Of a stretch of DNA of 64,000 nt, positions 2,530 through 43,504 are shown piece by piece (within the stretch, counting starts at the first letter, position 1; each line of letters starts with the position of its first letter). The stretch lies in sequence record OR413575.1. The stretch is one strand, 5' to 3'. The notes beneath the pieces were generated by a model that saw only the letters and a list, made by a program, of their open reading frames with translations, ran no database searches and was not told the DNA's origin. The position numbers were made by a program, and so were the translations under genes.

Positions 2530-2560
2530 GGCACCTTCGGGTGCCTTCTTTTTTTTTGTC
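2530..2560 (+). terminator. intrinsic terminator
   Basis: GGCACC-TTCG-GGTGCC, U-tract, GTC; the same hairpin recurs at 31177. Confidence 0.85.
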
Positions 2561-2618
2561 TGAATCGATATAACAACTATTGCGATGGCATCTTGTGTGA
2601 ATGCATAGGAGTGCTAAA

Positions 2619-5572: not shown

Positions 5573-7657
5573 TTAGGCGTTAAGCTCGTCACGGCGATAA
5601 GCAACCGTGTAAGCGGACATTACGGTACGCATACCGTTTGCACCGATATCGATCGGGCAAGTCCAGCTATAACCACGCTGGTCATCGGCACGAGTTGCCT
5701 GACTGTGCGGAACAACGTCCATGCGGTCATCCATAGCACCAGCGCATTTGTTGGTGATGGATTCGTCAGAACGTTCAATCAGCTGTTCCAGTTTCAGCTT
5801 CTGGTTACCGGTCAGGTCACGCCAAGTTTCCCAAGCATAACGAGCCAGCTGCGCAACGCACAGACCAACCAGTGCAGAGTTCAGTACGGAAGTCTGATCC
5901 GTATAGAAGGACTGCATACCAGGATAGAACAGACGGTTGTTGTGGTCGTAATCTTCTACGTACACAACAGACTGAGCCCACAGGCGGCGTTTACCGCGCC
6001 ATGCTTTATCGATGATGTTCAGATCTTTGAGTTCGGAAACAATGTAGTTACCGTTGTCAGAAGTATCCGGAGCACGATCAGGGTTCAGAACGCCGTTGTC
6101 ACTTGCGCCATACCACATCAGTTTATACGCGAAGTCCACAGCCAGAACCGCATCGACGTTACGATTGTTCTGAGCCAGGTGGCCGGTATGACCGATGAGG
6201 GCACCACGGAACGGAGGCGTGCCGTATTCCACGCTATCCGGGAACATCTGCAGACGAGTCAACAGAGAGGCTGCGATAGACTCTTCAGTTTCTTCATCGT
6301 TCGGATCACGCGTGATATCCTGTGTAGACAGAACCAGGTATGAATCCTGGCGGACACGCAGGAGGTTCATCAGGCTATATTTGGTAGCCAGGTCGTACCC
6401 AGAGTCAACCATGAAGTTGAACGGGAAGCGGGCCATGTTTTCCAAACGAACGCCGGGTGCTGACAGATCGTCGAAGATTTCTTTAACGAGTTCGTTGAAA
6501 ACTTCGTTATTCATCGTACCATCAGAGCCGCCTTTGAAGTAGAACGTAGAGTTTTCGGTGAACATGATGCTACCGTCAACAATACCTTCCAGCTGCACAG
6601 AGTGGTAAGGAACATCTTCAACAGTTACTGCGCCGAGCAGGTTAACCTGCTGCCAGTCGTCTTCACCATCACCGACAGTACCGAAAGGTGATTCAGTTGC
6701 CTGAATCATTTTCAGAACTTCTTCAATAGTGGCATCGTACTGATGTACGCGACCGACCGGGCTACGCTGATAATATTCAGCGCTGTTGTCTTCCCACATG
6801 CCAGGGATACGCGCGTTGAAGTCCAGCAGAATACCACCGTCTTGTTCAGAAATTACTTTCTGACCGAAGGAGAAGGTAGTGCTGACCTGATCGTATTTGT
6901 TCGGAATAACTTTCGCTGCTTCGAACTCAGACGGACGGCGAACCAACTGCATACGGTTGATGAAGGAGTTAACTTCTTCATTCAGACCGACGCTTGCGGC
7001 AATCGCGGAAGTAATAGTAGGAGCCCACATCGTGAAGCCGAGGTTGTTACCTGCGCTACCGAAGTCTGCTACTACCATGTCAATCAGAGGGATACGACGA
7101 GATTTCTCACCACTAATGGAAGAAGTCATCGTACCTTCAGATTCCTTACGACGACCAAAGGTACTTAACCCTTTATCGTCTACCGGGATGGCCGATTCGA
7201 AGAACGCATAGCGATAACCTTCGACGGTGTCACCGGTAGGAATCAGTGCGCCTGTTTGAGCATCACGTTTGTAGTCGCCGTTCGGAGTACGTTCGTATTC
7301 CGGGATCATGTCTTTAACAATTTCAATGTCAAAGCACAGAGTGGCTTCAGGGGCAGCATCTTTAGCGCGTAAGCGCCAGAAGATACCACGAGTTTGCGCT
7401 TTAATTGCACGACTAATATAAGTCGTAGCGTGAGTCGCATAGTCGGAATCGAAATTGATAACCTCTTCGCCGTAAGACGAAACGATTTCCGAAGTGTGCA
7501 TCCAGGCTGGTCCTTCTTTACCCATAGGGGCGAAGCTGAACATGATCGGACGAACAAACGGAAGGGGGGATTGATCTGGGCGTACTAGTCCGCCAGATTT
7601 ATCCTGAGTCCCTAACCAATAAAGACCCGGAGTGGAACTTGTAATCTGCTCCATCAT
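5573..7657 (-). CDS. tail sheath protein (phiKZ gp29-like)
   Basis: About 694 aa; FKGGSDG and DSGYDLATK sheath-type motifs; GGAG SD; paired with the tube. Confidence 0.85.
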   Translation of the reverse strand: MMEQITSSTPGLYWLGTQDKSGGLVRPDQSPLPFVRPIMFSFAPMGKEGPAWMHTSEIVSSYGEEVINFDSDYATHATTYISRAIKAQTRGIFWRLRAKDAAPEATLCFDIEIVKDMIPEYERTPNGDYKRDAQTGALIPTGDTVEGYRYAFFESAIPVDDKGLSTFGRRKESEGTMTSSISGEKSRRIPLIDMVVADFGSAGNNLGFTMWAPTITSAIAASVGLNEEVNSFINRMQLVRRPSEFEAAKVIPNKYDQVSTTFSFGQKVISEQDGGILLDFNARIPGMWEDNSAEYYQRSPVGRVHQYDATIEEVLKMIQATESPFGTVGDGEDDWQQVNLLGAVTVEDVPYHSVQLEGIVDGSIMFTENSTFYFKGGSDGTMNNEVFNELVKEIFDDLSAPGVRLENMARFPFNFMVDSGYDLATKYSLMNLLRVRQDSYLVLSTQDITRDPNDEETEESIAASLLTRLQMFPDSVEYGTPPFRGALIGHTGHLAQNNRNVDAVLAVDFAYKLMWYGASDNGVLNPDRAPDTSDNGNYIVSELKDLNIIDKAWRGKRRLWAQSVVYVEDYDHNNRLFYPGMQSFYTDQTSVLNSALVGLCVAQLARYAWETWRDLTGNQKLKLEQLIERSDESITNKCAGAMDDRMDVVPHSQATRADDQRGYSWTCPIDIGANGMRTVMSAYTVAYRRDELNA

Positions 7658-15196: not shown

Positions 15197-15955
15197 ATGA
15201 ATATTAAAGGTTTCCCTTTCGACTCATTTACTCCTGCTACTAATAAGTTAATGCTGGATTTAGGTATTGAACAAACGCTGATCGATTTTGCCTCTGCTAA
15301 CATTGAACGTAACGATGTAGCACATCGCCATGATCATGTTGAAGATGTAATACTGAAAGTCTTCGATTATTACGATGCTCTCTATGGTATAGCTAATACG
15401 CCGTTAGTAGTTAATGAGAAACGTCGGGCAGTTGCAGCGGCGTTATTACATGACATCGGTTGCTGGATGGATCGCGATGCTCACCACCTGATTGCATCTA
15501 ATTGGGTATTGTCATTGCGTGAAGATCAATTCAGTCAAATGTTCTACGGTATTAATCCTGACGACATTTCTGTGGTCGCAGTAGCTATCTTAGAGCATCG
15601 GGCCAGTTGGAAGTTTGCACGTAAATCAGCAGTAAGTGATATTGTTGCAGCTGCGGATCGTGGTTCCTTCTGTCCGAAGGAATATCTTCGCCGTGCTTAC
15701 TTATACGGGCGTAGTAAGTTAAAGATGCGCGGTAGTGAAGCTCTGACAAGAGCTGTAGATCATTTCATGGAAAAGTATAAAGATGGGGGATATGTATACG
15801 AAGCGATGCCTGAAATCTGTAAGCAATTCAACCAAGCCAGTATTGCGCAGATTAAAGCTGCTGCTAACAATCGTGCGTGGTGTGAAGATACTATCGCAGA
15901 TAACATGTTAGAGTGGGAAGTGACTTATGAGGAGATGACTAATGCAAGTAGCTAA
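15197..15955 (+). CDS. HD-domain phosphohydrolase
   Basis: H..H, LLHDIG, EHR and AADR motifs in order. Confidence 0.85.
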   Translation: MNIKGFPFDSFTPATNKLMLDLGIEQTLIDFASANIERNDVAHRHDHVEDVILKVFDYYDALYGIANTPLVVNEKRRAVAAALLHDIGCWMDRDAHHLIASNWVLSLREDQFSQMFYGINPDDISVVAVAILEHRASWKFARKSAVSDIVAAADRGSFCPKEYLRRAYLYGRSKLKMRGSEALTRAVDHFMEKYKDGGYVYEAMPEICKQFNQASIAQIKAAANNRAWCEDTIADNMLEWEVTYEEMTNASS

Positions 15956-16454
15956 TTTAAAGAGTAGGACGCATTCTCCTACTCGTGCTATGCCGGTACG
16001 TATCGCTAGTACGTTAGCATTTATTGAGAGCTATCGTAAATCGCGAGCGGCCGAATCTAATTTTGAACTAAAACGGGAGAACATACATGCTCATGAGTTT
16101 GCTTATTTGATCACAGATCTGCCATCTGGTAAATTCTTTGTATACGGTATCGTAAGTAAAAGGAATCCTGATAACACAGGTGTGTTAACGGAAGAAGATT
16201 TAACTGAAATTAAAGCATTGATTCCTGATGATCAGGAGTATGTTGATATCGTTCGCGGGTTCGACTTTGAAGCGGATGAAGACAACAGTGAAATAACTGT
16301 TTACCTGGGTGCTGAATGGGTATTTGCAATACTGGTGGACGAAGAGTTAGGATGTTACACGATTGAACGCAACGAATACCTGGATCGCTCTTCAGATATT
16401 TATACATTAATCAAGACTGCTGGCAAAGCATTCAGAATAGCAAGAGGCTACTGA
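15942..16454 (+). CDS. hypothetical acidic protein
   Basis: GAGGAG SD; overlaps the end of the HD gene. Confidence 0.7.
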   Translation: MQVANLKSRTHSPTRAMPVRIASTLAFIESYRKSRAAESNFELKRENIHAHEFAYLITDLPSGKFFVYGIVSKRNPDNTGVLTEEDLTEIKALIPDDQEYVDIVRGFDFEADEDNSEITVYLGAEWVFAILVDEELGCYTIERNEYLDRSSDIYTLIKTAGKAFRIARGY

Positions 16455-16527
16455 CAGCATAGCCCCCGGACCCGTTAAGGTCCGGGGGCTTAGCCAGGGG
16501 TATCTTATCCCTTATTTTTTTTTTGAC
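16453..16527. terminator. bidirectional terminator
   Basis: GCCCCCGGACC-CGTTAA-GGTCCGGGGGC; T10 then GAC downstream on +; TATGCTGTC tail on -. Confidence 0.75.
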
Positions 16528-16697
16528 TGAAGGCCGATGGTATCTAGAAGGTGATCAAGATATGAGGTATCCGCCAAGTCAAAACTCCTTTTCGCGTACC
16601 GTGTGACAAACGGTGTATGCTAGGAGCTGTCGAGCAGCGCCGCGCTCTTTGAATCCCGGATCAAGTTAATCGGAATACGCAGCGCTGTTCGTACATA
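16453..16697. ncRNA. candidate structured RNA with embedded micro-ORF
   Basis: Three consecutive stem domains; minus-strand TATG start; terminator-bounded; strand ambiguous. Confidence 0.4.
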
Positions 16698-16740
16698 AGT
16701 ATAGTAATGTTACCTAATTTTTTACGCGTTTTCATTCTGA

Positions 16741-16774
16741 CAAAAAAAAAAGGAGTGGGCGCGACCCCACTCCT
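16741..16774 (-). terminator. intrinsic terminator
   Basis: GGAGTGGG-loop-CCCACTCC, T10 and GTC on the minus strand. Confidence 0.85.
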
Positions 16775-16923
16775 GCGTCTGAGGAAACAATGTCCATGGT
16801 AGACAGTTAACCGGACTGTGTCCATATTGGTGAATGTTACACCGGTGATAGATTTGCGCTCTTTAACACTTAAGGTGCGACACGCTCAGTTAACATACTA
16901 AGTGTATAAAAACGTTACGCAAC

Positions 16924-18144
16924 TTACCCTGTTGGACCCATCGCGGTGTAATAACTCATCGTCATTGCTCGAAGTACTAGATACAGGATGACAGACGTCC
17001 TTTCACCTGATACCGGGTACGGGCTTGGTTTGCCGATAGCGCGTCGGACTAACTTATCGCCTTCGTTACGTAAGAACATAACTTCGCTACTAGACCCACG
17101 ACTTGAGTTAATCGCACCTTTAATCACCAACATGCACTCAGACAAGTTGTTAGCATTGATCCCTTTATCAACAATCAGTTGGAACGAAAAGTCGAGAGTA
17201 CGTTTAACGAGCTCGTGGACTTTACGCTCGGTGGGTTTGTTGTAGATCGAGGAGAGATATAATAGGGTGTCCTGGAAGTAGCCAGCGTTCCCTGAAGGGT
17301 TTGACTCAGCGACAATGTCAACAAGGTTTTGACGAACAAATGATGCACCTTCACCTATAATTCCTTCTAAGTAGCGACGATACTGCGACTCATTACGTTT
17401 TAAGTCACGTACGCCTACCTCACCTTCCATCTCCATTAACGAGGATGTTACAGAGATACCTGCGCCTTCTGAACGAACGATGTAATAAAGTTCGGTAGCG
17501 TTCTTAATAGTAGAACGGGCACGAGTCTGTGAATCGCTTAGGATATAAGCAATGTCATCGTCATCGTTATAGCGAATAAAGGTTTGGATATGAATTGATT
17601 GTTTAGCGATCATATTCTGGGATTTCACTTCGCAAAGTGTATACCAGTTACGATGTACTCGGAGATCGTATTTATAATTCATTGATTCGTACGTACGTTG
17701 GGCTAACTGAACATTTACGCCGAATCTGAAAAAATGGTTTAAGATAGAGGACAAGAACTTATACTGCAACAGACTGAGAAGTTTGACTGCAACGTCCTCT
17801 TTCTGTTTCTGCGGTAAAGAACTTACCAATGTCTTATGTACCAGGAAAGTAATAGCTAAGTTAAATGCGTTACTTGCCACCTTATGCTCAGGGTTAACTG
17901 ATCCATCTTGGTAGAGCGCCTGTTGAAGTTCAGATTCATCTGCTGACATAATGTCAGTGAAGAACCGCGCGGTGTCGGACGGGAGCCATTTTATCTCTGT
18001 ACTTAGTAACCCGTTACCAAAGAACTTGATGTGTTCCGGGCTACGGCTTACATAGTTGTTTGCGAAACTGAGTACTGCCTTGGCAAAACGTCCGTCAATC
18101 TTCAATCCGGCACATTGGGATTCAAATACTGATTTGATTGACAT
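16924..18144 (-). CDS. conserved chimallivirus virion protein (phiKZ gp32 position)
   Basis: About 406 aa, helical, ending VILYLVLRAMT; GGAG SD; lone minus-strand gene near the tail block. Confidence 0.6.
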   Translation of the reverse strand: MSIKSVFESQCAGLKIDGRFAKAVLSFANNYVSRSPEHIKFFGNGLLSTEIKWLPSDTARFFTDIMSADESELQQALYQDGSVNPEHKVASNAFNLAITFLVHKTLVSSLPQKQKEDVAVKLLSLLQYKFLSSILNHFFRFGVNVQLAQRTYESMNYKYDLRVHRNWYTLCEVKSQNMIAKQSIHIQTFIRYNDDDDIAYILSDSQTRARSTIKNATELYYIVRSEGAGISVTSSLMEMEGEVGVRDLKRNESQYRRYLEGIIGEGASFVRQNLVDIVAESNPSGNAGYFQDTLLYLSSIYNKPTERKVHELVKRTLDFSFQLIVDKGINANNLSECMLVIKGAINSSRGSSSEVMFLRNEGDKLVRRAIGKPSPYPVSGERTSVILYLVLRAMTMSYYTAMGPTG

Positions 18145-22770: not shown

Positions 22771-22986
22771 TTAAGTAAAAAATAAAGTAGTATCTATTAT
22801 TATGCGGTATTGAAGTCTGACACGGTCAATACCCCGTGGTCCTTTCCAGTCCCTGGAAAGCTGAGTGAAATTGAATGAAGTGAACGTAGTGAACGGAATG
22901 AGATCCTAGTAGTTGACCTTGACCTTAGGGGGTGGGGGTCTGTGACTGACAAAATCAAATTAACTAATTAATTAGGAGAGTATGTC

Positions 22987-39974: not shown

Positions 39975-40010
39975 TAAAGGAGGGCTCGAGCCCTCCTTTA
40001 TTTTTTTGTC
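39975..40010 (+). terminator. intrinsic terminator
   Basis: TAAAGGAGGGC-TCGA-GCCCTCCTTTA, T7, GTC. Confidence 0.85.
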
Positions 40011-40076
40011 TCGTTTATTTTTGAGTAATTAACCCATTAGTATAGAGAGAATAAATTTAACCAAAAAGGTTTCAAC

Positions 40077-43326: not shown

Positions 43327-43485
43327 AACTTGCTCCTGTTTATGGTTTACATAAGATTAGCTATCCGATCGTGTAAAAAATAAATACTGTATATATTGTA
43401 TGTAGAAATACATTGCTGGGTCGCTCCCAGCATATCCAGATTTGATGTATGTCCAGTAAAAAGGCATTTCTAAAAAATCTACAGT

Positions 43486-43504
43486 TATACATTACTATAG
43501 TGAA
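43486..43504 (+). promoter_or_regulatory. early-type promoter of chimallin
   Basis: TATACATTAC-TAT-AGTGAA; upstream TATG sites at 43399 and 43448. Confidence 0.7.

Follow-up and report, generated by a model that had tools for sequence, protein, structure and literature searches.

The final 64 kb of the genome of Salmonella phage SPLA10 (OR413575.1, 210,197 bp), a stretch of 64,000 nucleotides that we call the window and whose position 1 corresponds to position 146,198 of the record, carry an inserted element of about 215 bp (16525-16740) between the terminators of two converging genes, one coding for a 170-aa protein and the other for a head-associated protein. This element is probably a new accessory gene for a non-coding RNA, and we give a probability of about 0.6 to the reading that the RNA is functional, is made from the minus strand and is driven by a promoter of its own. 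Its predicted core comprises 174 nt of the minus strand (16521..16694), from the G at the presumed start point, +1 (16694), to the end of the third hairpin (16521), with a score of 198.6 bits for our covariance model, R1. SPLA10 itself is a nucleus-forming giant phage of phiKZ type, because its genome encodes a nuclear-shell protein, the tubulin PhuZ and split RNA-polymerase subunits, and because its closest named relative is Serratia phage PCH45.

This reading rests first of all on a fold of three hairpins, which is conserved with compensatory changes among 13 distinct versions of the element belonging to three lineages, namely the SPLA10 type, the L004/L014 type and, as the most distant one, L005 (L numbers being our handles for related loci). 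The core, which is 174-177 nt long in the alignment of these versions, has a consensus fold of 53 pairs in which 98.1% of the cells are paired and both partners have changed in a compensatory way at seven pairs; this number was reached in none of 500 column shuffles, and structures slid by one to three columns gave none or one. Domain I (16629..16694, minus strand) is a long imperfect hairpin that starts from +1, with CGAGCAGCGC (16631-16640) paired to GCGCTGTTCG (16682-16691); its internal loop, AUUCAAAG, is one-sided and invariant, and its apical helix relies on U-G pairs. In its long stem there are two compensatory pairs, C-G/G-C and U-A/C-G, and the 6-nt insertion of L005 sits in its apical loop. 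Domain II (16584..16627, minus strand) has a closing stem, CUCCU/AGGAG, around an inner hairpin, ACCGU/ACGGU; in DNA letters, CTCC (16585-16588) pairs with GGAG (16623-16626), and the pairing of ACCGT (16598-16602) with ACGGT (16610-16614) is nested inside. Three of ten distinct rows carry a compensatory change from A-U to G-C in the inner stem, and one arm of the closing stem is the AAGGAG that had been read earlier as a Shine-Dalgarno (SD) sequence. Domain III (16521..16583, minus strand) consists of an outer stem, UUUUGACU/AGUCAAAA, a middle stem and an apical stem, UAUCU/AGAUA, the loop of which contains an invariant GAUCACC; here TTTTGACT (16521-16528) pairs with AGTCAAAA (16577-16584), and all four compensatory pairs occur in L005, three of them side by side in the outer stem and the fourth in the middle one. 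Over the RNA region the identity to L005 is 73%, versus 47-52% in the flanks. The preliminary description of this DNA, which was made from the letters alone, had listed these stems together with a minus-strand TATG and a 21-aa open reading frame (ORF) preceded by AAGGAG, a 7-nt spacer and TTG, and all of them lie where it had placed them; its broader proposal of a structured RNA element between convergent terminators is likewise borne out by helices that are kept in all 13 versions. A direct repeat of 22 nt, 73% identical between its copies (16553-16574 and 16659-16680), joins the 5' halves of domains III and I, with CUUGAUC of the minus strand in both copies; it could be a trace of internal duplication or be due to chance.

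Which of the two strands is folded? Watson-Crick covariation is strand-symmetric and cannot separate them, and the strength of the folds was compared instead. For 16521-16694 the minus strand has a z-score of about -4.4 to -5.0 and the plus strand of about -2.4 to -3.0. Among 260 random windows of 174 nt from the SPLA10 genome the mean z is -1.0 and 1.5% lie at or below -4, against which the minus strand, at -5.0, falls in about the top 1% and the plus strand is at -2.4. The consensus fold of the core has an energy of -49.8 kcal/mol on the minus strand versus -41.1 kcal/mol on the plus strand; four lineages taken one by one give -59 to -61.5 kcal/mol (z -3.4 to -4.8) for the former and -53 to -59.5 kcal/mol (z -1.1 to -3.0) for the latter. 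The gap is largest in domain I, with -27 to -33 kcal/mol on the minus strand versus -20 to -26 kcal/mol on the plus strand in the same four lineages; its apical helix requires U-G pairs and is re-paired with G-U in L005. Across the consensus fold, G-U pairs are used at eight positions on the minus strand, where two other positions are A-C and would be G-U if the plus strand were folded. The earlier suggestion that the wobbles favour folding on the plus strand is therefore reversed by energies, z-scores and wobble use alike. Overall, the minus strand is favoured by fold energies together with the conserved promoter block described below.

Directly upstream of the fold on the minus strand lies a predicted promoter of phage type (16695..16725), composed of an A-tract, GTAAAAAAT (16725-16717), a core of 11 nt, ACATTACTATA (16710-16700), and TATG (16697-16694) followed by TAC. 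The block from -17 to -1 is unpaired and 100% identical between SPLA10 and L005, versus 47% for the adjacent spacer and 47-52% for flanking non-coding DNA. TATG, extended to TATGTAC, is invariant in all 13 versions, and the predicted +1, G16694, coincides with the first base of the first helix of domain I. In phiKZ, late transcription by the non-virion RNA polymerase needs TATG, with its G as +1, and the sequence downstream also matters (PMC4666361). Within SPLA10, TATGTAC precedes the divergent tail-sheath pair (7695 and 7704 of the window), an internal-head gene and PhuZ (33733), and the major-head gene carries TATGTAA. The start of a minus-strand RNA at TATG, as originally proposed, thus appears to be the best reading of a fully conserved promoter block whose end resembles that of structural-gene promoters. 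The 11-nt core is also found, identical, upstream of the nuclear-shell gene (43489-43499). The A-tract fits a third recurrent layout, in which an A-tract, written GTAAAAAATAAA, is followed after 14-15 nt by TATG; this occurs exactly at 2421-2451, 22775-22804 and 43373-43402 of the plus strand, where none is expected, as well as at record position 5929 of the minus strand. Consequently the promoter looks composite. No sigma-70 promoter was found within the element, and no plus-strand promoter motif of the phage's own classes within 16525-16740.

Some observations on these motifs extend to other parts of the genome. The core shared with the nuclear-shell gene is part of a second promoter-like class ending in ATTACT..AGTGAAG, of which there are about eleven intergenic copies, four in the window (15135, 18206, 24633 and 43491, plus strand) and about seven elsewhere in the record. 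The genes downstream include the HD-like gene and the nuclear-shell gene, and the motif, which is strongly conserved, has the look of a further class of phage promoter, perhaps an early one. Among the copies of the A-tract layout, the one at 2421 is followed after about 100 nt by a terminator-like hairpin and T-run, ahead of the next gene, and the one at 43373 precedes the nuclear-shell gene; these copies could mark short leader transcripts or a promoter class of middle type.

The distribution of the element is that of an insertion polymorphism at this locus, which we followed by using the head protein of 406/410 aa as anchor for the orthologous positions. All 13 versions come from relatives whose head proteins are 88-99% identical and whose converging genes are separated by 458-469 nt, the gap in SPLA10 being 469 nt. 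The element is absent from PCH45, from one IMG/VR relative and from five more metagenomic relatives (head protein 74-78% identical), in which the gap is reduced to 210-235 nt and the two terminators nearly abut. Members of the SPLA10 branch come from Salmonella and E. coli samples. Two near-complete phage genomes are present as single contigs of about 205 kb in assemblies labelled Salmonella enterica (L015, GCA_024557885.1; L022, GCA_007234215.1), and the same head protein is also found under an E. coli label; from these labels it follows that the phage has repeatedly been sequenced alongside bacterial isolates.

Outside this locus we found nothing comparable. A covariance-model search of the SPLA10 record, scanned as four separate pieces, and of the loci of eight relatives recovered one copy only, with no diverged homologue or paralogue. 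With the element as query, BLAST against collections of phages, plasmids and E. coli returned SPLA10 alone, and scans of viral, metagenome and genome collections for exact patterns of three conserved blocks gave no accepted match. A 23-nt match in Flavobacterium weaverense was set aside as chance, for it lies within an ORF of 1008 aa with unlike flanks and about 0.14 such matches would be expected by a rough estimate; lenient blastn added only two results, which we likewise took as chance: a different intergenic region matches the element over 61 nt (70%, E = 0.01), and the leader of the nuclear-shell gene resembles it over a short distance. Rfam 15 at its gathering threshold gave no match in the whole window, and at E <= 10 the window and three relatives gave sub-threshold matches only, none of which recurred across lineages over the body of the RNA; the sole recurrent one, suhB/mmgR, falls on the head-gene terminator. 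ARAGORN found no genes for transfer RNA or transfer-messenger RNA in the window. An origin as a mobile element resembling a miniature inverted-repeat transposable element was rejected, since the terminal inverted repeat consists of the T-runs of both terminators with a few added bases and is not kept in L005, and since the element is in single copy. In the literature searched on PCH45 transcripts we found nothing on this locus.

No ORF of the element is conserved as a coding sequence. The 21-aa ORF (16512..16577, minus strand), with TTG as start, is open in 12 of the 13 versions at lengths of 21-28 aa, its C-terminus varying with the length of the A-run. In L005 a deletion of 5 nt leaves five of its codons, and the hairpin is kept by compensatory changes. 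Where residues 2 and 3 differ (A to P, D to N), the change goes together with one that restores the stem, and the peptide is charged or polar; we therefore judge that this is not a gene. The same holds for a 27-aa ORF on the opposite strand (16523..16606, plus strand), which has an internal ATG at 16562 that leaves 14 codons and, upstream of this, a strong SD, AGAAGGTGATC, that is the apical loop of domain III read on the other strand. Its ATG is deleted in L005, a deletion of 1 nt shifts the upstream frame in the L004 type and, in an alignment of SPLA10 with L014 read by eye, all six changed sense codons alter the amino acid. Two further candidates were discarded: an ORF of 11-13 aa starting in TATG, because its AUG would precede +1, and one of 65 aa that runs antisense to the 170-aa gene and is interrupted in L014. 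As far as these sequence comparisons go, coding by the element is not supported.

The terminators on either side of the insertion belong to the two neighbouring genes, and a terminator scan found six terminator-like sites versus 1.5 expected. The upstream operon ends in a tandem terminator (16461..16524, plus strand) made of a GC hairpin (16461-16490), a small hairpin (16496-16512) and T10 (16515-16524), both hairpins of which maintain their pairing via compensatory changes. At the same site PCH45-like relatives have one hairpin only, and the extra GC hairpin beside the stop codon is restricted to the clade carrying the element. On the other side, the gene for the 410-aa head protein ends in a hairpin (16774-16751) followed by a T-run (16741..16774, minus strand), which forms the far boundary of the inserted stretch, is 97-100% identical across the three lineages and is found in all relatives. 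The converging terminators reported at first inspection are thereby confirmed. The 3' region of the head gene has diverged to an equal degree and, in contrast to the RNA element, no conserved structure besides the terminator was found in it. Every PCH45-like relative has TATGT just past the stop of this gene, with the terminator 132-166 nt further on (window 16742-16897, minus strand; equivalents in L002-L012); a second small transcript, or else a site of processing, could lie here. Many terminators of SPLA10 are built alike, with GTCT or GTCA behind the T-run that follows a GC hairpin (for example in window 2550-2580, 16741-16750 and 40000-40030), a form that suggests a termination signal specific to the phage.

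The 3' end of the predicted RNA is less sharply marked than its start. Past domain III the minus strand continues with A10, the complement of the small plus-strand terminator hairpin and the strong GC hairpin (16490-16461). The scan found no minus-strand terminator between 16694 and 16455, and the element hence lacks the build of an intrinsically terminated small RNA (sRNA), the Hfq-dependent ones included; a weak hairpin (15984-15962) is the sole further minus-strand site that resembles a terminator. The GC hairpin may have been acquired together with the cassette, and transcription may stop there to give an RNA of about 240 nt, in line with the earlier proposal; processing near the A-run, at about 175 nt, and reading on as an antisense RNA are other possible outcomes.

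From these elements we infer transcription itself, its start and end and a mode of action along the following lines. The promoter at 16725-16695 would be used by a phage RNA polymerase to start transcription at G16694 or a few bases from it, and the RNA would fold into its three hairpin domains (16694-16521). It would measure roughly 175-240 nt, its end being set either by processing close to the A-run or by the GC hairpin (16490-16461). The cassette would have been gained by the SPLA10 branch of the PCH45-like nucleus-forming phages, or retained only there, in the neutral slot between converging terminators, much like a moron. Our best guess is that the RNA would act in trans via its invariant unpaired segments, either binding a protein or pairing with another RNA. 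Each domain has candidate contact segments: the internal loop AUUCAAAG in the first, both loops in the second and, in the third, the apical loop that holds GAUCACC. The RNA might also act on the mRNA (messenger RNA) of the upstream operon, since its 3' part and the 3' end of that mRNA are complementary.

Several findings weigh against this account. The minus strand lacks a canonical terminator, its GC hairpin being followed by only four U in 8-9 nt, and the upstream A-tract of the promoter is not kept in L005. When the alignment is lengthened to include the small terminator hairpin, the consensus energies of the two strands become equal. When SPLA10 is compared with the L004 type, identity is lower over the RNA (84%) than over the adjacent 3' untranslated region (UTR), where it is 91%. 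Furthermore, the comparison spans three deep lineages only, and domain II is identical in the L004 type and L005, which makes recombination likely and independent changes few; recombination may thus inflate the apparent independence of the changes that we have counted.

Among the other explanations, a role mainly in cis, by antisense pairing or transcriptional interference, is unlikely. The promoter would then fire into the 3' end of the operon for terminase, HD-like protein and 170-aa protein, and the transcript would pair with the terminator hairpins or extend over the 170-aa gene, tuning the stability or termination of the mRNA, with the three hairpins serving as a stabilizing 5' module. 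The RNA is aimed at 16524-16455 without a strong minus-strand terminator ahead of the 170-aa gene, and the extra GC hairpin limited to the element-bearing clade also fits; yet such a role needs no conserved three-domain fold, compensatory changes or invariant loops, the weak hairpin at 15984-15962 is the sole further site on the minus strand that resembles a terminator, and the ORF antisense to the 170-aa gene is broken in L014. Quite unlikely, too, is the alternative already raised in the preliminary description, by which read-through past T10 would give a functional structured 3' extension on the plus strand. The symmetry of Watson-Crick changes allows this, plus-strand folds do lie below shuffled sequences, one G-U of the long stem in SPLA10 forms on that strand only, and a strong SD with ATG is present in two lineages. 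However, two hairpins and T10 come before the stretch, so that low read-through is expected; moreover, the plus strand of the element showed neither promoter motif nor 3' terminator, its energies are consistently weaker, and the conserved, unpaired block at 16695-16710, which looks like a promoter, would be left unexplained.

We consider it very unlikely that the stretch works as DNA, whether as a site of protein binding or cruciform formation or as a signal for packaging or replication, or that it is the inert remnant of a decaying insert. It lies near the terminase gene, its inverted repeats could form hairpins in DNA, and sister phages do without the insertion; but those sister phages have the same terminase and head genes, hence the stretch is not an essential signal for packaging or replication, its only terminal inverted repeat is that of the two T-runs and is not kept in L005, and selection on an RNA is suggested by helices that rely on G-U pairs and are maintained by compensatory changes across lineages with about 50% identity in their neutral flanks. 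Still less credible is a micro-protein mRNA gated by its fold, for the 21-aa ORF or for the plus-strand ORF of 14 or 27 codons, perhaps within a pair resembling type I toxin-antitoxin loci. Residues 4-12 of the 21-aa peptide are unchanged, with two synonymous differences, in a frame that is open in all but one version and follows AAGGAG at a spacing of 7 nt. Set against this are L005, which has the fold but five codons, the shifting C-terminus, the residues 2-3 that track pairing and the lack of hydrophobicity, as well as a plus-strand ORF that has no ATG in L005 and changes mostly non-synonymously. The gated micro-protein put forward in the preliminary description is not supported by these comparisons, and neither is its analogy with type I toxin-antitoxin loci, as there is neither a conserved hydrophobic ORF nor any sign of a second, opposed promoter. 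The minus-strand RNA under its own promoter thus continues to be the reading that we prefer.

As to the flanking genes, the one upstream (15942..16454, plus strand; 170 aa, function not assigned) is the last in a run formed by terminase, a weakly HD-like protein and the 170-aa protein, and the one downstream (16924..18144, minus strand) codes for the conserved head-associated protein of 406/410 aa (phrog_2921). The name of HD operon originally given to the upstream run is weakly founded: the 252-aa protein in question (window 15197-15955) reaches 20.6 bits with the Pfam HD family, for which the cut-off is 22 bits, and belongs to a PHROGs family of unknown function. Between the terminase and this HD-like gene, the close relatives L004 (4898-5884), L017 and L018 have an extra ORF of 328 aa that is absent from SPLA10 and had no match in a Pfam search; with it, the neighbourhood has two insertion polymorphisms.

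The apical loop of domain III invites comparison with the 3' tail of 16S ribosomal RNA (rRNA), the anti-SD region of which pairs with ribosome-binding sites of mRNA and is printed, for E. coli, as GAUCACCUCCUUA (PMC5732282). The loop opens with the same seven to eight letters (GAUCACCU in SPLA10 and the L004 type, GAUCACC in L005). However, the core CCUCC is altered to CCUUC or CCCUC, which sets the loop apart from a proper mimic of the anti-SD, and cmscan of the window and relatives found no likeness to rRNA. The match of eight letters, noticed after the fact, is weak evidence and could reflect chance or mirror the SD-like string of the plus strand. Little credence can be given to the idea that the RNA is a look-alike of the ribosome's mRNA-docking tail, which would pair with chosen ribosome-binding sites or divert a factor that binds or cuts the tail; it would be expressed from a hybrid promoter suited to early as well as late use, in a phage whose transcription, inside the phage nucleus, is kept apart from translation.

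With type I toxin-antitoxin loci the element shares a small ORF whose SD and start codon lie inside RNA stems, but it differs from them in that this ORF is neither conserved nor hydrophobic, no antisense promoter is evident and the copy is single. Its promoter resembles the late promoters of phiKZ in having TATG with the predicted start at G, and by the TAC that comes next it matches structural-gene promoters of SPLA10; unlike the phiKZ promoters, it adds an upstream A-tract and the 11-nt core common to the class that looks early. Classical phage morons are protein-coding accessory units lodged between conserved genes and are described mainly in temperate phages. Like these, the SPLA10 element is a discrete insertion between the terminators of its neighbours, is cleanly absent in some relatives and has its own promoter, the latter recognized by motif only; it differs in its product, apparently an RNA, and in having a promoter of a type native to the giant phage.

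To our knowledge, the non-coding RNAs of nucleus-forming giant phages are nearly unexplored, with a few mapped in Pseudomonas phages and none of known function. In this respect the element offers a sharply bounded candidate that combines comparative support for its fold with a readable promoter and a clean pattern of gain and loss. This pattern splits the branch associated with Salmonella and E. coli from the Serratia phage PCH45 and hints at an accessory, perhaps host-related role; along the way, the analysis also gives a first sketch of the promoter and terminator grammar of this phage group. The nearest known counterparts are the sRNAs of phiKZ and 201phi2-1, mapped by ONT-cappable-seq (ONT, Oxford Nanopore Technologies), among which 11 have been reported for 201phi2-1, three of them intergenic (PMC11512511, PMC10914365). 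The one that is conserved there, sRNA005 in 201phi2-1 and the sRNA upstream of gp182 in phiKZ, lies in the 5' UTR of a tail gene of the gp182 family, whereas the SPLA10 element, compared by location, sits between the genes of the 170-aa and head proteins. It has no known homology to those sRNAs in sequence or position, and it also departs from them in that it was inserted between converging terminators, is confined to a single small clade and lacks a terminator close by; but it is like them as a predicted short, intergenic, non-coding transcript of a nucleus-forming giant phage that is defined by a phage promoter.

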